A DNA stretch of 52,682 bases, filler included, from Bipalium vagum (Eukaryota): assembly GCA_037834085.1 (NCBI GenBank). It is 2 parts of 2 records of this genome, joined end to end, with 100 filler letters (N's around TTAATTAATTAA, not from the genome) between each part and the next. Parts side by side here need not be neighbours in the genome. Positions count along the whole stretch, not along the records: positions 23,124 to 52,682 come from JBBMKC010023554.1; 1 more part is not named here. One strand, given 5' to 3'. A model generated the notes under the pieces. The model made no database searches and was not told where the DNA came from. It worked only from the letters and a program-made list of their open reading frames with translations. Made by a program: the position numbers and the translations under genes. Positions within the stretch are counted from its first letter, which is position 1; every line of letters begins with the position of its first letter. Positions 34,286 through 52,019 of this stretch are shown in pieces.

Positions 34286-34325
34286 TTTTGGTCCTGAGAT
34301 AGGCCTCTATCTGGTGGCTGCCTAG

Positions 34326-36692
34326 TCAGCTTTGCTCCAAGTCTGCGGCAGTGAGTGGAATGTCGCAGACGTCGGTTGATGTTGGCATTGTGGCCTTGAT
34401 GTGAGAGCTGATGTGCGAGGGCAAATTTTTTCGGGCAATCGCTTGGCCACAAATGCATCGGTACATAGAGTCCGGAGTGTGTTTGATTTGGTGATTATTG
34501 AGAAGGTGGGTGTCGAACCCACAGGCCTTGCCGTTATTAAAAGTGTATTTATTGTTACAATAGTTACACGTTAGGGAGTTGTAGGCTTTGAAAGTTGCTA
34601 TTGTTTCTGTATTGTCAATTGCTCCTGCGAAGAAATTAATGGCATTTAAATCCATGGAGCCATTACAAGATTCCGCTATGTCTTCCATGTTGATTGTTGG
34701 TTGAGATATCGTTTCATTTAATTCACTTTCAGAATCAAGGTCTGAGAGTGAGTCACAGCCGGGATTGGTAGCGTAAACATCGTGTGGTGTTGCGACAGGT
34801 GCATTGATGGTTTTGAGTGTTGTTTGGATTAGCGGCCGGGCGTTGTTTGAGGATGATTTTCTGGAAGAGGCGACTGATATAATAGATATATCATCGTCAG
34901 AGTTATTTTCATTGAATTGGGTTATCATTGTTTTTCGGCGTTTAAGAGGTTTTCTGGTGACGTGCGGGGATGTTTCGATGGTGTTCGTTTGCATAGTCTG
35001 GGTGCCGAAATCCCGCGTTTCAATCATAGTTTGTGTTTCAACCGTGGATCTGAATATCGGTGGAGGGGGAATGATATCATCATCATCATCATCATCATTT
35101 TTGTCATTGTTTTCTTCCGGTATTGATTCATCAATGACAATGATATCATCCTCTTCCGCTGGTGGAGGTGGAAGATAGTCTTCGTCAATGGAACAAGTCG
35201 GTTCGGCGTCGAGATCGACTTCCATCAATTGGGTTTCCGGCTCTATGATCAATTCTTGAGATGTTTCATTGATCGTTTCGAGAGATTTTATTGGTGTTGT
35301 TTTTTCGTCAGGATTGATGGTAGGCTTGGCAGGATTTTCGTGATTTTTGGTGGAGATTGATTTTTCGGGCGGAGCAAACCCGAAACCTATGATTCCTCTT
35401 TTTTCCATGTCCGGGTTGTACCGGTAATCCACGAGGAGAGGCATATTGCGACGATTTACCTTGATTTCCCGGTACGTCGCCCGGAACATGTTCGATTTTT
35501 GTCCATGTATTGGACGCCAGCCAGCGAAGATCCATCTTTTCTGTCCAATCAGATCTGGCCTTGGACAGTTTTCCCGGTTGTATTTTGGGAAATTGTAATT
35601 GGGAGCCGTTTTTGAGTTATTCGGCCTATGTGTTGGCTCCTTTATGGCATTTTCAGTTGATGGAGTTTCGTTAATTGGTGGATTTTGTTGTTTGATGTTT
35701 GGCATTTTTTCATTTAGGACTTTTTCGGTTGGCTTGGTCTTCTTGTTTTGAGTATTCTGATTCTGGTCTTTGTTAGATTTCATTTTTTCACTTCGTGGCT
35801 TTTGAGGATAGTTTTGCTTACGATTTTGCCCTTTGCTTTGGTTGACTGGCGGCTTCTTCTGCCAGTTTTTCTTCTTTCTATTCACGACGGTCCATCCCTC
35901 TTCGCCTGTGACCGTCACTTTCCTATCCCCGTTGGTGGCCTCGATGGTAAGGCTGGGGCCCTTATACCTATTCTCCGGGATCTTAACTTTTTCTTTAAAC
36001 GCTACTTTCTCGCTCTGCTTAGCGCCTTCTTCTTTGTCTCGCTTAAGCTCATTTCTTAAGTTCTCGATCATCCCTAATAAGTCTTGGATGGTGGCCGATT
36101 TTGAGTGACTGTTGGGTTTTTTTGAGGAATTTTTTGGGCCTGAGTTCTTATTGGCGCCATTATTTTTGCCAGTAGGGGTCGCAGTTGGCCGTGGTTGTTG
36201 GATGGTGGCCCCTACTGGTTCAATTGGGACTAACTCATAGAGCCGCCCATCGGATCCCCTAACAGTCTTGGTTAGCACTTCACAGTACGATGGGGTCAAC
36301 TTATCCTGAACGTAGCATCTAAAGTCTTTATTTGCCCCATCGGCTATTATCTGACATTTAGCCCTGGTGACTAAGGATGCCATGTACAACGCATTATACG
36401 CATTGTGTAAATGTATTTTAGTATAATAAGCTATAATATTCATAAATATATAGGTAAATACTTTTATACATTGAGAGATGATAAAGTAAAATGGGCCAAT
36501 GGGAAGCTGGGGATAAGTGCCAGTTCCCATGGGGAGATTACTCTCCTTTTCACCCCCCCGCGCATAATTGAAACATGAAATAGGATTTTTCCCGAGGGTT
36601 TTGGTAAAAAGTGGAGTTAAATTCAGGGAAAAGACATTGAAAATATGGGGGTGAGGCCCTGGAGCAGATGGTTGGAGGTCAATGCAGACCAT
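34326..36692 (-). CDS. Copy A N-terminal protein (788 aa): basic/disordered region, conserved central domain and two C2H2-like fingers; ends at the UGA-CUAG
   Basis: Long ORF homologous to 41682-44225 and 47443-49551. Fingers CNYC..HLLNNH and CIC..HISSH. Strong protein-like conservation begins at MASLVTR (ATG 36383). Confidence 0.85.
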   Translation of the reverse strand: MVCIDLQPSAPGPHPHIFNVFSLNLTPLFTKTLGKNPISCFNYARGGEKESNLPMGTGTYPQLPIGPFYFIISQCIKVFTYIFMNIIAYYTKIHLHNAYNALYMASLVTRAKCQIIADGANKDFRCYVQDKLTPSYCEVLTKTVRGSDGRLYELVPIEPVGATIQQPRPTATPTGKNNGANKNSGPKNSSKKPNSHSKSATIQDLLGMIENLRNELKRDKEEGAKQSEKVAFKEKVKIPENRYKGPSLTIEATNGDRKVTVTGEEGWTVVNRKKKNWQKKPPVNQSKGQNRKQNYPQKPRSEKMKSNKDQNQNTQNKKTKPTEKVLNEKMPNIKQQNPPINETPSTENAIKEPTHRPNNSKTAPNYNFPKYNRENCPRPDLIGQKRWIFAGWRPIHGQKSNMFRATYREIKVNRRNMPLLVDYRYNPDMEKRGIIGFGFAPPEKSISTKNHENPAKPTINPDEKTTPIKSLETINETSQELIIEPETQLMEVDLDAEPTCSIDEDYLPPPPAEEDDIIVIDESIPEENNDKNDDDDDDDIIPPPPIFRSTVETQTMIETRDFGTQTMQTNTIETSPHVTRKPLKRRKTMITQFNENNSDDDISIISVASSRKSSSNNARPLIQTTLKTINAPVATPHDVYATNPGCDSLSDLDSESELNETISQPTINMEDIAESCNGSMDLNAINFFAGAIDNTETIATFKAYNSLTCNYCNNKYTFNNGKACGFDTHLLNNHQIKHTPDSMYRCICGQAIARKNLPSHISSHIKATMPTSTDVCDIPLTAADLEQS

Positions 36693-45515: not shown

Positions 45516-45536
45516 AGCTATGAAGCTAGAAGCGAT
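45501..45536 (-). ncRNA. RNU2: U2 snRNA 5' fragment starting exactly at +1, without the promoter
   Basis: ATCGCTTCTAGCTTCATAGCTATGATC-CCGC-GTGTA; the first 27 nt are identical to the 41304 copy. Confidence 0.85.
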
Positions 45537-47442
45537 TGATTGATTCTAATAACAGATGGTGAGTAGCTCCGTGTACAACCCCAAGATAAGTATAAAGATT
45601 TTCGGGAGAAACTGTTGGGATATTTTCTCCATAGATTGTGACTGTGGAGTTGGTTTTATTTGATAGATATCCACATTTTGATGGACGGAATTTGAGGTGG
45701 ATAGCGTCTGAGAGAGAAGAAATAATGTTGAGCCGTTCTTGGAGGCTTGATTGGCTAGGGGCAATGAGAACAAGGTCATCAGCATAGGCCAAACAAGAGA
45801 AATCATGCCCAAGAGTTTTGAGTTTGGGGGTCATGTTCTCCATTTTTGCGATGATAAAATTTATGCAAAGACAAAAGATTGTCATAGAAAGTGGACAACC
45901 TTGTTTCACGCCCTTATTGATCTTAATATAGCCAGTCTGAAGGTGAAAACACGAGTAGCTGGTGAAATTTTCTGAGTAGATGGCCTTCAGAAGTTCAATG
46001 TGAGTATCCGGAATGCCCATTTTATGAAGCGTAACCCATATGAGTTGGTGAGGGATACTTGGAAAGGCTTCAGAAATATCCAAAAAGCAAATATGGTGTT
46101 CTTTTTTGCTGGTTTTGGTCGACTCGATAATGCCGTTGATAATTGCATTATGTTCTCCACAGCCATTATCGTTGAAGAGGGCTTTCTGATTCCGGTGGAT
46201 AAGAGAATTTTGCTTTATCCATGATAGCATTCTGTTGTTAATGATCAGTGCAAATAATCGGTACGAAGTGTTGAGCACAGCAATGGGCCTCCATGATGAC
46301 ATGAGGTGGGAGTGATGGTCTTTCCCTGGCTTCAAAATTAGACTTGTTTTGAACCTTCTCCATTGCTGTGGGATAATTCGCGAGTTGATGATGTAATTGA
46401 ATAATGCGGACAGAAATTCACCTTCGGGATCAATAAGTTTCCAATCCTGATAATTGATACCATCAAGTCCGGCTGCTGATTTGTTGGAAGATTTCAGGGC
46501 ATCAATCACTTCTAAGGGTGAGATGGTGTCGAAGAGGTTGTTGAAAGGATGATTTGGGAAGTTGAAGAGAAGTGATTGGTTGATTTCTGGTGGGACTTCA
46601 GAGGAAAAATGATTAAAAATATCTTCGATGGTTGGAAAAGCGGTTGGTTTGCTTGATGGGAGGAGAGAGTTGAAGGTGTCCTTTGGATGATTTTCATATT
46701 GTTGCCGGAAATTGAAAGAAGATTTAATCTGGTTCTCCAGGTGTTGATGGGATGGAGTTTTCTTCTTTTTATTCTTCGCAAATCTTGATGGAAAAAGATC
46801 AGCGATTGCATTGCAGGCAGAGTCGAGGGCCTGTGCTGGATCAGCGTTGATTGATTGGAGTTTGCTGATCGATTCTAACAGCAGATGGTGAGTGGTTTTG
46901 CGTGAGCTGTTACGGTCCGGCTTTTTTGCTCTGGCAGCGAGAATGTTATCGACGAGATGTTGGATTTTACTTTTGAGAGCGGAAATGTCTGGGGCATTGA
47001 AGATTGTCGAATTTGCGAGGAAATCCATCGCATATTGGATAATGAAATATCCACAATCAAATCCAGGACCCTGCAGTGGCTGCGAATCGAGAGTGCTTTG
47101 ATCGATCGGGTTAGGATCAAAGGTGCAGCATGTTTTATTAATGACCGTGTTCAAAAGATCAAAAAGATGGAGTTGGTCATCTGCAAGGGTCTGAGAGGCT
47201 GGATCTAGAAGAAATGATTTTTTGGCAACCCGATCAGCCAAGAAGATAAGCCAATGATTGGATTGCCAATGAATTGGCCAAATTATCTTCTGCCAGTTTG
47301 CCATTTTTGTAAATGGGAAGCATTCGTAAAATTCTTTAATTTTACCCTGCGTTAAGGCGACTGCAGGCCCCGGTCGGATGAAAATATGATGATCGTTTTG
47401 GATGTGAGACCGGAGGAATGCTTCAATCTGGTGGCTGCCTAG
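45526..47442 (-). CDS. Copy C Ulp1-like protease and reverse transcriptase, 3'-truncated; in frame with the upstream ORF across TGA 47445-47443
   Basis: 46 sense codons (LGSHQIEAFLRSH..PFTK) precede MANWQK at 47304. Protease NHW/LLDP/QGPGFDCG. RT motifs SAAGLDG, WRPIAV, FLDISEAFPSI, GVKQGCPLS, LAYADDL and YTYLG. Confidence 0.92.
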   Translation of the reverse strand, partial: LGSHQIEAFLRSHIQNDHHIFIRPGPAVALTQGKIKEFYECFPFTKMANWQKIIWPIHWQSNHWLIFLADRVAKKSFLLDPASQTLADDQLHLFDLLNTVINKTCCTFDPNPIDQSTLDSQPLQGPGFDCGYFIIQYAMDFLANSTIFNAPDISALKSKIQHLVDNILAARAKKPDRNSSRKTTHHLLLESISKLQSINADPAQALDSACNAIADLFPSRFAKNKKKKTPSHQHLENQIKSSFNFRQQYENHPKDTFNSLLPSSKPTAFPTIEDIFNHFSSEVPPEINQSLLFNFPNHPFNNLFDTISPLEVIDALKSSNKSAAGLDGINYQDWKLIDPEGEFLSALFNYIINSRIIPQQWRRFKTSLILKPGKDHHSHLMSSWRPIAVLNTSYRLFALIINNRMLSWIKQNSLIHRNQKALFNDNGCGEHNAIINGIIESTKTSKKEHHICFLDISEAFPSIPHQLIWVTLHKMGIPDTHIELLKAIYSENFTSYSCFHLQTGYIKINKGVKQGCPLSMTIFCLCINFIIAKMENMTPKLKTLGHDFSCLAYADDLVLIAPSQSSLQERLNIISSLSDAIHLKFRPSKCGYLSNKTNSTVTIYGENIPTVSPENLYTYLGVVHGATHHLLLESINRF

Positions 47443-50400
47443 TCATGCTGACTCACGGTCCGCCGTGGTCAGTGGGATGTTGGTGATATCGGCATTCGAT
47501 TCAGTTGGTGCTTCGAGGTGAGACAGTAAATGAATCTTGATGGTCTCACGAGGGATTGAGATACCACAGAAGCATCGATAGATGGATGTTGGTGTTGGAT
47601 GGAGGTTGTGCTTCTTTTTAAGATGGTCGTCGAGGCCCCTAGATTTATTCTTTGACCATTGGTATGCTTTCCGGCAGGTATTGCATGCGACCCGATCAAT
47701 GGATGTAAAGATAGCAATGGTTTCGTCGGGTGTGTTTGGTAAAACACCCGCAAAGAAGTTAATGGTGTTGAGATTGATGGTACCATTGCAGGAGTCTTGG
47801 AGCTCCGTGCTTGGTCGGGATATATCAAGTTCGAAGTCATCATCGGTTAGCGAAAAGGAGTCAGGATCAGCTCTAGCTTCAGGTTGTTGTTGTTGTTGCA
47901 GAGGAGGAGGCGGAAGTGGCATGGCACGAATTTCAGCCAGTAGAGGCCTTGCACTGGATGTTGAAGCCCTGGATGACGCAATAGAGATGATGGAGACGTT
48001 ATCATCCGAGTCATCAGGGTTAGTGCGGTTGAAGAATGTTTTTCTCCGCTTAATTGGCTTGCGAGGGGCAATTGGCGAAATTTCTGTTAAAATATCACCC
48101 GTTTGTGTGGCCATCTCCCTCGTCTCCACATCCGTTTGAGTGGCTATCGTGGACCGAAATGCCGGTGGAGGTGGAATGATGTCATCGACATCGTCTTCTT
48201 CTGGTACGGGTTCTTCTACGATGTAAATATCTTCGTCAATATCCGGTGGAGGTGGAAATATATCTTCCTCAATGGAGCAGGTTGGCTCCGCATCAAGGTC
48301 AACCTCCATCTTTTGTGGTTCAGTTGGTATTTCTGTCACAACTGGAACCGTTGGATTGTCAGTTTGTTGATTGGATTGGTCCGGTTCGATAGAGTTTTCT
48401 GTTGCGTTTTGAATGTTGGTGGTGGTTGGTTGCACGGGCTCTTTTTCCTTCGGTTTGCTGATGGTCTTTTCGGGCGGTGCAAAGCCGAAGCCCACAATTT
48501 TGCGCTTCTCCATGTCTGGGTTGTACCGGTAGTCAACCAGGAGGGGCATGTTGCGCCGATTCACTTTAATCTCCCGATATGTCGCCCTGAACATATTGGA
48601 GTTTTGCCCATGTATTGGGCGCCATCCGGTAAAGATCCATCTCTTCTGCCCAATTAAATCCGGCCTTGGGCAGTTTTCCTGATTGTATTTAGGAAAGTTA
48701 TAGTTTGGAGCCGTTTTGGAATTATTCGGCTTATGCGTTGGATCTGGCTTGGTGTTTTTGGATATTTGCTTGGCGTTCGATGGAGTTTTTGGTTTCTCAA
48801 TGTTGGACGGTAGTTGGTTCGAATCCTTCTTGTTTGATTTATTCTTGTTGGATTCTTGCTGTTTATTATTCTTTTGGTGTGATGTGGTTTTATTTGGTTG
48901 TTGATTTTTATTTTGTGGATGCGGCGGATTTTTCGGCCTTTGGTTATCATGCGGCAGTTGTTGATTTTGCCGTTTGTTTTGGTTTTGGTTTTGGTGGTAC
49001 TTGACTGGCGGCTTCTTCTGCCAGTTTTTCTTTTTTCCTCCTACGACGGTCCATCCTTCTTCACCCGTAACCGTCACCTTCCTATCCCCGTTGGTGGCCT
49101 CGATGGTAAGGCTGGGGCCCTTATACTTATCGTCCGTATGTCTAACTTGTTCTTTACCTATTCCTCCAGATTGCCTAGCGCCTGAAGTCCCATCTCGCCT
49201 AACTTCAGCCCTAAGCTCATCAATCATCCGTATCAGGTCTTTAATTTCGGCCGATTTTACGTGACTCAGTTTTTTGTTATTCATTTTTGGGCCTGTGTTC
49301 TTATTGCCGCCTTTATGTTGACCGGCAGGGGTCTGGGTTGGCCGTGGTTGTATCTGCGGACCTGCCGGTTCGAGGGGGACTAGCTCATATAACCGCCCGT
49401 CTATCCCCCTAACAGTCTTGCATACAACCTCGGAATACGATGGGGTTACCTTATCCTGGTTATACACTTGAAAGTTTTTCGTAGCTCCATCGGCTATAAT
49501 TTGACATTTGGTCCTCGTGACCAAAGATGTCAGGAACAACGCATTGTACACGTTGTTTAGATGTATATAATTAATATACGAGGCAAAAATATATATAAAA
49601 ATATTTAAAAATACTTTTATACACTCAAAATATTAATAACTCAAATATAATAACAATAAGAGACGGGCCAATAGGAAGCTGGGGATAAGTGCCAGCTCTC
49701 ATGGGGAGATTGCGCTCCATTACACCCCCCCGCGCATAATTGAAACAGAAATTATGATTTTTCCCGGAGGTTTCTGTGAAAAAGTTCATTAAATTTGGGA
49801 AAAAATGAATAAATTTATGGGGTTGTAGCCCTGGGAGAGATGGCTGGGAGTCAGTGCAGTCCATCTGGGTATTTTTATAATAAAACATATTAAATATACG
49901 TTAAGAAGACTGCAATTGCGGCGGTCATTGGTCATTGATTTGTTAAAAAGTTTAAATTTTTTAAGGTGGAAAAGGCCAAAAGTCATGGTTTTTAAATTTG
50001 GATATCCTTGCATCTGGCGGCGATCAATTTTAGATATTAAACAATTAAGAAAGAGGATCGTCCGGCCTTTAATTTGATGTAAGATAAGCTCTGGGAGAAA
50101 ATAATTGAGAGTGTTGGAGACAAGCAAAGATTTAGAAAATGTAAGGAAAAACTTAGTTAGAAATTTACTCAAATTTCTAACTAAAGTGATGGTTTTAGAT
50201 TGTGCGTAACGTTTTAACAGAGCGATGGAAAAAGCTCGGGGAGGACTTATACGAAAGAGCACCGTTGAAATTGTACTAAATAGTACAATTTCGGTCTTGC
50301 GGATAACGGTGGAGGCCTCAGAAGTCCAAACAACAGAGATGGATTTACCCAGAGATATTAAATTGTTGTTTAAGTGTAAATTTAAATATTTTTGAGACGC

Positions 50401-51848
50401 AATATCTCTGGGTAATCTTATTCAAAAAATAAGGTGGAAGTATCATATAATAGAGAAAAAAATTCTCTATTATATGATACGAGAATTTTGGGCTAAAACT
50501 CAAAATTAAAAATTTATAAAAATTTTTGTTATAACCAGAATTTAAATATGCGTTGTTAGGCGCACATTCAAGTAGGTTAAAATGGCCTAAATAAAAAACC
50601 CAATTATTATAATAAAGACCGCACGCATTACAGGCTTCTATTATAATATAAATAATGCCAAACTTTAGCTTCAATTTGGCACTAAGAACGTTAAATTCAG
50701 ATAAAAATTGACAAAATAAATTTTTTGCCATTTTAAAATTAAAAATCTTAGTTATTTTGAGTGAAATCTCAAAAATTGGGCTATATCTGGTGGTAAATTC
50801 ATCATAGATGAATTCCTTGGTGCCAAATTGATATAAATTTAATATGAAAACAAATTGGGGGGTATTAAAATTAAAATCTTTACTTAAAATTTGGAAAATT
50901 CGATTTTTGTGACAACACTTAACTAAATTACCTCCGGTTGGCTTTCTACCGGCCAACTCGGCTTGCCCACGGCCGTTGGAACGACCGCAGGACTCCCCAG
51001 ATGCTTCCTTACAGGGAAGCCGGGGTGAGCAATATTGTAAGTCGAAAAATGTCGACCCATAGCGGCTCATCCATCCCCTGTCACTGTCAACACGATTTAC
51101 CCACGGTTCCGCGAGTGGCACCGCGGATTTGGGCATTGCCTCGGAATCGTCTCGTCGAGGACTTTCCATTGGTAGGCCGGGCAGTTGGATCCGACCAGTA
51201 TTCGCATTTTTCATAATTTCGACCGAAATTGTTTCGCCTTTTTTGCATTGGCGAACTTTGGCATTGCGTAAATGTTTGAATTTCAGTCCGAATTTTGCAT
51301 CTGATGTATCATTTGGAAGATCTCGTCGAGATCTATAAAGTGCTGTGACTTTATTTGGAATCGTAGCCGAATTCGTAGAATGGTCATTGATCGAAGTTCT
51401 GCATATGAAAGTGCGGTTGAAATTCTGGAGGAGTTTGAAATCCTCCAGAGATCTTGGGCTTCTTCGGATTGGAGCCGTCAGGATATCAAATTAATCGTCT
51501 TTGGAAGAGGCATCTGATGGTACCTCGCTTGACACCATAGCTGGAGAAATGGTGGAGCTGATCTTCGGCATGGAGGCGCCATCTTGGCATCCATCTTGGA
51601 TGGCCGATCTTTTCCTGGTAGAGCTGGGAACGGTTTTAAAATGAATGGTGGATGAAACTTTACCAGTTTTTGTGTTGTGTAAACCCAATGGGCAAACCAC
51701 AACACCAATTTTTTTCACATATTCGGAATTTGAGCAGAAACATGGCGGTTGCCATGCTGGAGTTCCCTCGGAATTCGAAGAGGTATCATAAATATTTCCT
51801 TTCATTTGGCTTTGGGATTGACCAAGAAGTGAACAGAGCTTTTTTTTT
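45565..51848 (-). mobile_element. Copy C: longest NeSL/Utopia-like element, 3'-truncated at the end of RT
   Basis: Leader, N-terminal ORF, UGA-CUAG, protease and RT occur in order directly downstream of a U2 fragment that retains its promoter. Confidence 0.92.
47443..49551 (-). CDS. Copy C N-terminal protein (702 aa) with two C2H2-like fingers
   Basis: Homologous to A and B. Fingers CNTC..HLKKKH and CFC..HLLSH. CTG at 49533 aligns with the ATG of A and B. Confidence 0.85.
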   Translation of the reverse strand: MYNALFLTSLVTRTKCQIIADGATKNFQVYNQDKVTPSYSEVVCKTVRGIDGRLYELVPLEPAGPQIQPRPTQTPAGQHKGGNKNTGPKMNNKKLSHVKSAEIKDLIRMIDELRAEVRRDGTSGARQSGGIGKEQVRHTDDKYKGPSLTIEATNGDRKVTVTGEEGWTVVGGKKKNWQKKPPVKYHQNQNQNKRQNQQLPHDNQRPKNPPHPQNKNQQPNKTTSHQKNNKQQESNKNKSNKKDSNQLPSNIEKPKTPSNAKQISKNTKPDPTHKPNNSKTAPNYNFPKYNQENCPRPDLIGQKRWIFTGWRPIHGQNSNMFRATYREIKVNRRNMPLLVDYRYNPDMEKRKIVGFGFAPPEKTISKPKEKEPVQPTTTNIQNATENSIEPDQSNQQTDNPTVPVVTEIPTEPQKMEVDLDAEPTCSIEEDIFPPPPDIDEDIYIVEEPVPEEDDVDDIIPPPPAFRSTIATQTDVETREMATQTGDILTEISPIAPRKPIKRRKTFFNRTNPDDSDDNVSIISIASSRASTSSARPLLAEIRAMPLPPPPLQQQQQPEARADPDSFSLTDDDFELDISRPSTELQDSCNGTINLNTINFFAGVLPNTPDETIAIFTSIDRVACNTCRKAYQWSKNKSRGLDDHLKKKHNLHPTPTSIYRCFCGISIPRETIKIHLLSHLEAPTESNADITNIPLTTADRESA

Positions 51849-51853
51849 ATCAT
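49625..51853 (-). pseudogene. Copy C leader frame, broken by one TAA and several frameshifts
   Basis: ORF pieces 51491-51904, 50345-51214, 49789-50262 and 49625-49888 match the A and B leader translation in order. The first two are in the same frame, separated by TAA 51493 and 92 sense codons. Confidence 0.55.
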
Positions 51854-51874
51854 AGCTATGAAGCTAGAAGCGAT
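51849..51874 (-). ncRNA. RNU2: U2 snRNA 5' fragment (nt 1-26) at the head of copy C
   Basis: ATCGCTTCTAGCTTCATAGCTATGAT, followed by A9-GC-TCTGTTC. Confidence 0.85.
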
Positions 51875-51990
51875 AAAAAAGAGGAGGGAGCGACCGCGGG
51901 ACATGCCGTGAACATAGCCATGTCTAGGGTTTTTTATGTAACATTTAAAAATTGAATATTTGACGATAAAAAGTGAAAAAACGACGTTTC
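51875..51990 (-). promoter_or_regulatory. Putative U2 promoter region, second copy
   Basis: Near-identical to 41305-41420 (GAGGAGGGAGCGA.CGCGGGACA.GCCGTG..TAGGGTTTTTT..AAAAGTGAAAAAACGACGTTT). Confidence 0.7.
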
Positions 51991-52019
51991 TATGTTTATT
52001 TGCGTTGAGATTTCGATAA

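Follow-up and report, generated by a model that had tools for sequence, protein, structure and literature searches.

A conserved in-frame UGA at the lid-tryptophan position of an Ulp1-like protease as a probable programmed readthrough site in a clade of non-LTR retrotransposons

A 52,682-nucleotide stretch of DNA from Bipalium vagum (GenBank assembly GCA_037834085.1), referred to here as the window, carries at positions 23124-52682 (JBBMKC010023554.1, the part analysed) copies of a retrotransposon lacking long terminal repeats (a non-LTR retrotransposon) on the minus strand, in which an in-frame TGA separates the coding region for two zinc fingers from that for an Ulp1-like protease and a reverse transcriptase (RT). 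Sequence comparison and structural modelling lead us to propose, with good confidence, that this TGA is a programmed recoding site that is read through, and that it characterises a large and old clade of Ulp1-containing non-LTR retrotransposons of the restriction-like endonuclease (RLE) type, similar to R2, NeSL and Utopia.

Three head-to-tail copies (A, B and C; Table 1) are present in this part of the window, diverged from each other and all defective, with repeat spacings of approximately 7.1 and 6.05 kb. The 702-residue open reading frame (ORF) of copy C, which with its stop occupies 49551..47443, ends GCA TGA CTA GGC AGC CAC CAG ATT, and, as the initial annotation had reported, the same frame remains open past the TGA, for 638 codons to a stop at 45526, and encodes Peptidase_C48 (PF02902) and RVT_1 (PF00078) domains. 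The N-terminal part of the upstream ORF is variable and of low complexity, and its last ~110 amino acids, which form two Cys/His zinc fingers, are the only part kept between distant lineages; the BED-like finger nearest the stop is a weak match in copy C and passes the 20.6-bit zf-BED cut-off in lineage L069 (21.9 bits). Copy A has the same stop and context, also as first described, and the shared 17-mer TGACTAGGCAGCCACCA occurs twice in the window against 0.02 occurrences expected by chance. Past its TGA, copy A suffers an internal deletion after 13 codons and resumes in the CCHC/endonuclease end, and copy B has no TGA site because its upstream ORF breaks off before the zinc fingers. The frame of copy C ends within or just after the RT, without the thumb, CCHC motif or endonuclease, so that, of the protease-RT-endonuclease whose gating by the stop was originally suggested, copy C encodes the protease and the RT, and the endonuclease part of the claim does not hold there. 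With copy C lacking an endonuclease and copy A deleted, neither is a working protease-RT-endonuclease element.

The TGA is widely conserved within the genome. The assembly comprises 440 Mb in 272,664 contigs, in which the Ulp1 segment has at least 771 candidate matches, and every copy that was fetched was aligned at the codon preceding the conserved L-G-(S/G) motif. TGA occupies this codon in 51 non-redundant copies, down to about 34% protein identity; the exceptions are one CGA, one TAA and two indel-damaged copies, and none has TGG. A genome-wide count of the codon preceding the 14-mer CTAGGCAGCCAYCA gives 46 TGA, one TAA, one AGA and no TGG. Most genome copies are decayed. The initial annotation would have been contradicted by young intact copies with TGG, and the copies with long open frames on both sides (C91511, C104123, C206376, C204224 and C119142) all carry TGA; C91511 has at least 495 open codons upstream and 1117 downstream, and C104123 at least 495 and 1144. 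Among the variants listed from the contigs of one DNA run (78 further variants exist), none falls at 47408-47489, which lends weak support.

An exhaustive HMMER search identifies relatives outside this genome. The nearest share 31-36% identity over the whole downstream ORF and 24-33% in the Ulp1 segment, and are recorded as predicted proteins starting 3-50 residues past the stop position. One of these, P0002 (L088:899-1985), has a first 'Met' whose codon is no ATG, and its downstream frame has no ATG for 361 codons; database models of these elements are thus given false start codons. In each of six contigs, from as many other samples, the homologous codon is an in-frame TGA, with C as the next base and CTC, CAA, CTA, CTT, CTT and CTG as the following triplets. 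Their upstream frames are open, in the frame of the stop, up to 733+ codons long and end in Cys/His zinc fingers, and the downstream frames extend for 1108-1155 codons in five and 879 in the sixth. In a more distant clade, L092 (sample ERZ5540424) has TGA CGG at L092:2914-2916 with 971 open codons upstream and 1117 downstream; the stop there separates one Ulp1 domain and the zinc fingers, encoded upstream, from a second Ulp1-like domain and the RT. A still more distant single-ORF relative from a deep-sea sediment metagenome, P0016, has a real Trp at the site ('GKWLSDSVI').

The position of the stop within the protease is defined by structural comparison. Neither a search for homologous proteins with the Ulp1 part, within its length range, nor a sequence search of the PDB returned a match, and a fold search was needed. 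The AlphaFold model of the protease domain has a predicted local distance difference test score (pLDDT) of 88.9, and Foldseek matches it best to yeast Ulp1 and to human SENP5, SENP1 and SENP2 (probability 1.00). VIA-align superimposes it on Ulp1, SENP and Den1 structures with Z 15-17 and a root-mean-square deviation of 2.5-2.8 A over 161-165 residues, and residue 1 of the model pairs with Ulp1 449, SENP1 466, SENP2 411 and Den1 27, each of which directly follows the conserved Trp. Because of this pairing, the UGA is, by the model, at the lid-tryptophan position of an otherwise intact predicted protease, in agreement with the initial assignment of the stop to the Trp of the Ulp1 W-L motif. Among 16 lineages with 24-53% identity to copy C, aligned over the first 221 residues past the stop, His63-Trp64, Asp80, Gln124 and Cys130 are invariant or nearly so; the catalytic residues of C48 proteases (His, Asp, Cys), their oxyanion Gln and the channel Trp are thus kept, and the first (lid) Trp is the UGA codon. 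The I-P-L-T-x-x-D segment on the 5' side of the stop resembles, as a sequence pattern, the I-T-x-x-D-x-x-x-L that precedes the lid Trp in Ulp1/SENP proteases. In SENP1 the lid is Trp465, which covers the substrate's conserved Gly-Gly motif (PMC5030089).

The nucleotides around the stop are also constrained. The +4 base is C in 49 of the 51 internal copies and in 7/7 external elements, and C follows none of the nine terminal stops of the same ORFs. CTA follows the stop in 32/51 copies. Twenty-seven non-redundant LGSH-type lineages, with a median of 57% nucleotide identity outside the motif, were used to compare synonymous sites: Leu +1 is CTA in 27/27, Gly +2 is GGC in 24/27 and Ser +3 is AGC in 21/27, and these lineages use all six Leu codons freely nearby. 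Such scarcity of synonymous variation 3' of the stop is, on this comparison, the constraint that a nucleotide-level signal predicts. UGA CUA G is an established high-readthrough motif in animals (PMC12233894; PMC4132726; PMC4359377; bioRxiv 10.64898/2026.07.14.738498), and, consistent with the leaky context first pointed out, the stop, frame and +4 C persist down to 24-34% protein identity, here and in seven contigs from six other samples.

On the proposal that we favour, a single reading frame of the element mRNA specifies, in order, the variable N-terminal region, two zinc fingers, the UGA, the Ulp1 protease, RT, a CCHC motif and an endonuclease. For most ribosomes translation would end at the UGA, making the zinc-finger protein the main product. 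A minority would decode the UGA with a near-cognate tRNA, aided by the leaky UGA-C (UGA CUA G in the lineages of the window), and make a zinc-finger-Ulp1-RT-endonuclease polyprotein as the minor product, such that the stop would set the ratio of the two. The residue inserted is probably Trp, a point on which we are less confident than on readthrough itself: Trp insertion would give a complete protease, since the stop is at the lid Trp and tRNA-Trp is a natural near-cognate reader of UGA. Higher tRNA-Trp leads to more stop codon readthrough in reporter systems in human cells (PMC8136774).

Two cistrons could also account for the arrangement if the UGA were a true terminator and the protease-RT-endonuclease ORF were started independently, by reinitiation, internal entry or a non-AUG codon. 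Gene callers do predict two proteins, and stop-start coupling is used by other non-LTR elements such as SART1 (UAAUG). Independent initiation does not, however, require a shared frame, and both ORFs share one frame in all of the ~58 elements. The third-codon-position variability on both flanks follows the stop's own frame, and pairwise Nei-Gojobori ratios of nonsynonymous to synonymous substitution (dN/dS) are 0.27-0.31 for the 14 codons 5' of the stop, which include the conserved I-P-L-T-x-x-D segment, and 0.17 for the 16 codons 3'; by these measures both flanks are under in-frame purifying selection. No downstream ATG is conserved, the first occurring anywhere from codon 29 to codon 362, and reinitiation at ATG 47304, raised in the initial annotation as an alternative that would undo it, finds no support: that ATG is not conserved, and one intact relative has no ATG for 361 codons. 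The codon past the stop is CUA, CUU or CUC and rarely CUG, and the Ulp1 fold begins at residue +1, such that a separately initiated protein would miss the lid Trp of a domain that extends across the stop. We consider independent initiation improbable, if the least so of the alternatives.

A-to-I editing of the RNA, converting UGA to UGI to be read as UGG, as happens at the hepatitis delta virus amber/W site, is about as improbable, and marginally more so. It would yield the same protein with Trp at the right place, and 120 nt past the stop of L014, L062, L083, L086 and L088 fold better than shuffled sequences (z -3 to -5), which would offer a stable local structure. Other lineages have z up to +2, and some have no excess structure at all; no conserved duplex was found, and the 17-mer has no complementary partner within the window. 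Of the possible 5' neighbours ADAR favours G least, and the strict +4 C and CUA G context is predicted by readthrough and not by editing.

An ordinary nonsense mutation of TGG to TGA, without function and passed on to dead copies as segments or tandem units were duplicated, requires but a single transition, and would fit with the tandem and defective state of the three window copies and the decay of most others in the genome; it is nonetheless excluded for practical purposes, because the conservation is deep and broad and the divergence is too great for one recent duplication, with TGA present in lineages at 24-53% Ulp1 identity and in six other samples, in copies with 1100+ open codons downstream and some 500 or more upstream, with in-frame purifying selection on both flanks and without a TGG copy.

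Equally slight is the chance of some other recoding, whether selenocysteine insertion, a host code in which UGA is Trp, or removal of the stop with a tiny intron. UGA is the selenocysteine codon, yet homologues have Trp at this position rather than Cys or selenocysteine, and nine element loci contain no selenocysteine insertion sequence or other Rfam family. The open downstream frames contain 14-21 TGG codons, which specify all of the other Trp residues, and no other in-frame TGA, and TGA also terminates some of these ORFs; judged by this usage the genetic code is standard. An 18-nt micro-intron around the stop in copy C (GTGAGT...CTAG) was considered and rejected, as neither splice-like end is general: other lineages do not have GTGAGT, and those with CTT, CTC or CTG lack the AG after CT.

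Several points weigh against programmed readthrough. We infer readthrough itself, its frequency and the inserted residue from comparative and structural evidence, and the sole public run that contains the sequence is not recorded as RNA. The leakiness of UGA-C in this host is assumed from other eukaryotes, and the window's own signal is a fossil within defective copies. A stimulatory structure 3' of the stop is unproven: the arms of the stem first proposed, CTCCGGTC and GACCGGGG, do exist in copy C, and support by covariation across lineages did not emerge. RNAalifold finds no consensus structure 3' of the stop, and a two-helix model built from the best-folding lineages is 64% paired compared with 62.5% in column shuffles, without covariation in excess of column composition, with the pairing coming mostly from conserved codons (R-x and P-G-P, giving GGNCC/CCNGG). 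Rfam returns nothing meaningful around the stop, and at gathering score no selenocysteine insertion sequence, ribozyme or known frameshift or readthrough element in the nine element loci. In L092, by-eye alignment places the stop about 10 codons before the Trp-equivalent position, where there is a Thr; judging from this placement, a simpler role in dosage may come first and the connection with Trp second. The editing alternative, for such probability as it has, also counts here.

A stronger form of the readthrough proposal is that the stop is more than a dosage valve, in that only ribosomes inserting Trp would yield an active protease; Arg or Cys insertion would then give a polyprotein with a crippled protease. 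The activity of the element would be tied both to the frequency of readthrough and to the identity of the residue, and hence to the state of the host tRNA-Trp and release factors. We regard this as a tentative extension that is somewhat more likely to be wrong than right. If correct, it would be a recoding-coupled enzyme activation of a kind undescribed for any mobile element.

The elements are of the RLE type. This type is defined by an RT followed by a CCHC motif and a PD-(D/E)xK restriction-like endonuclease. They contain RVT_1, copy B and C206376 have a readable CCHC motif and a C-terminal nuclease region like that of R2, and the RT and C-terminal domain of P0016 match structures of R2 proteins; an Ulp1-like protease lies N-terminal to the RT (PF02902 match; fold match Z 17 to Ulp1/SENP). 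The single uninterrupted ORF of NeSL, R2 and Utopia elements is not found, as the in-frame TGA is present in all lineages examined. The label 'NeSL' used in the initial annotation is not established. NeSL elements insert site-specifically into nematode SL1 spliced-leader genes, and Utopia elements into U2 small nuclear RNA genes. The spliced leader SL1 22-mer, with one mismatch allowed, has no match in the 440-Mb assembly, which is fragmented such that absence is not proven, and Rfam finds no spliced leader RNA in the window; no U2 is found at the Rfam gathering score in the window or in the nine element loci, which were taken without defined element ends and flanks. With no SL1 sequence found, we do not file these elements as NeSL.

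The only RLE elements reported with an Ulp1-like protease are NeSL-1 of C. elegans and Utopia-1_TSP of Trichinella, both from nematodes (PMC4640811). They share with the elements described here the order of zinc fingers, Ulp1-like C48 protease, RT, CCHC and restriction-like endonuclease, as well as tandem or clustered copies (PMC4640811), but are described as encoding one protein, whereas here a conserved UGA interrupts the frame at the start of the protease. In our literature search no R2-, NeSL- or Utopia-type element was reported to have a conserved in-frame stop, although the original NeSL-1 description was outside its scope and a prior mention is possible. Relative to Ulp1/SENP/NEDP1 C48 proteases (1EUV, 2G4D, 1TH0, 1XT9), with which the fold (Z 15-17) and the His-Trp, Asp, Gln and Cys residues are shared, the difference is that a stop codon, and not TGG, stands for the lid Trp (Ulp1 448, SENP1 465).

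Readthrough sites are familiar from the gag-pol UAG of murine leukaemia virus and the nsP3-nsP4 UGA-C of alphaviruses, the latter with 'type II' UGA-CUA/CGG contexts. As in these viruses, a leaky in-frame stop here would precede the enzymes and keep their ratio low, and the UGA followed by C (CUA G or CGG) is shared; in contrast, this is a non-LTR retrotransposon, the stop is inside a folded protease at an important Trp, and no conserved stimulatory RNA structure was found. Cellular readthrough genes such as AQP4, MDH1, LDHB and OPRL1 have the same UGA CUA G core and coding potential kept past the stop (PMC4132726, PMC4359377, PMC12233894), as is the case here in diverged relatives, but add short C-terminal extensions, whereas more than 1100 codons with all of the enzymatic domains would depend on readthrough in these elements.

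R2, NeSL and Utopia types are textbook single-ORF retrotransposons that are now being engineered for gene insertion. If the readthrough proposal is correct, one branch has evolved a leaky stop before its enzymes in the manner of retroviruses and alphaviruses, and has kept it in relatives with as little as 24% identity in the domain next to the stop. Dozens of UGA-C contexts, natural and diverged, would form a comparative data set for readthrough rules, and a case in which it should matter functionally which residue is inserted. They also carry a warning for annotation, in that gene callers split such elements into two proteins or begin the second at false start codons.

Table 1. Features of retrotransposon copies A, B and C in the window.
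Feature	Position	Strand	Remarks
Copy C upstream ORF	47446..49551	-	702 codons from GTG; ORF listing
Copy C in-frame TGA	47443..47445	-	codon matching lid Trp of Ulp1/SENP proteases
17-nt TGACTAGGCAGCCACCA	47429..47445	-	stop and conserved 3' context (UGA CUA G...), synonymous sites constrained
BED-like zinc finger, just 5' of stop	47605..47694	-	weak Pfam zf-BED match, 19.9 bits, below 20.6 cut-off
14 codons directly 5' of stop	47446..47487	-	I-x-(D/N)-I-P-L-T-x-x-D motif, in the frame of the stop
Ulp1/SENP-fold protease domain	46930..47442	-	model residues 1-171
Copy C reverse transcriptase domain (RVT_1)	45652..46332	-	Pfam
Stop ending copy C frame	45526..45528	-	truncation; joins copy B 5' region
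Copy A TGA (34328-34326) and same 17-mer	34312..34328	-	AGC TGA CTA GGC AGC CAC CAG ATA
Copy A upstream ORF	34329..36692	-	788 aa
Copy B upstream ORF	41685..44225	-	homology lost just before zinc fingers; no TGA site
Copy B 3' part: RT end, linker, CCHC motif, restriction-like endonuclease	39675..41183	-	503-aa ORF
5' arm of proposed stem, CTCCGGTC	47408..47415	-	present in copy C
3' arm of proposed stem, GACCGGGG	47368..47375	-	present in copy C

Among the single-ORF relatives, P0008, P0009, P0021, P0046 and P0067 have two Ulp1-like domains, with a Gly-Gly-(Gly/Ser) motif soon after the first that is a candidate self-cleavage site by its sequence. The second Ulp1-like domain of these proteins has lost the lid Trp, and that of P0021 seemingly also lacks the catalytic His.

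Within the upstream ORFs we note an 81-amino acid module (PNYNFPKYN...GFGFAPPEK) at 48466-48708, 42459-42701 and 35361-35603 (minus strand), and at L031:5678-5920 and L017:2739-2981. Its identity between lineages is approximately 90% or higher, as against only ~52-77% in the rest of the upstream ORF. The module has no Pfam match and is absent in the distant lineages L069, L071, L089 and L090; a single-sequence model of low confidence (pLDDT 57.6) is all-beta with four strands. In the two lineages best preserved in this genome, the upstream ORFs (L069:1-1485 and L071:3924-5408) are extremely Asn-rich and of low complexity, with runs such as NNLNIKNLNN. A 585-residue ORF of doubtful coding status at 36864-38621 (minus strand), in the copy A 5' region, has no Pfam match, and its counterparts in copies B and C are split into shorter ORFs.

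Other features are found at the breaks and junctions of the copies. The peptide HHLLLESI is encoded twice in copy C on the minus strand, at ~46880 after the Ulp1 domain and at 45526-45560 where the RT joins the copy B 5' region, and this repeat may reflect microhomology where recombination or a deletion joined tandem copies. A full-length U6 small nuclear RNA gene (Rfam RF00026, 62 bits) is located at 41632-41736 on the plus strand, opposite to the element and exactly at the break of the copy B upstream ORF. A 156-nt segment adjoining it (41274-41429) recurs just 5' of copy C (51844-51999) with 88-94% identity, and together they could represent a U6 gene and promoter, a target linked to U6 or a mobile unit of its own.

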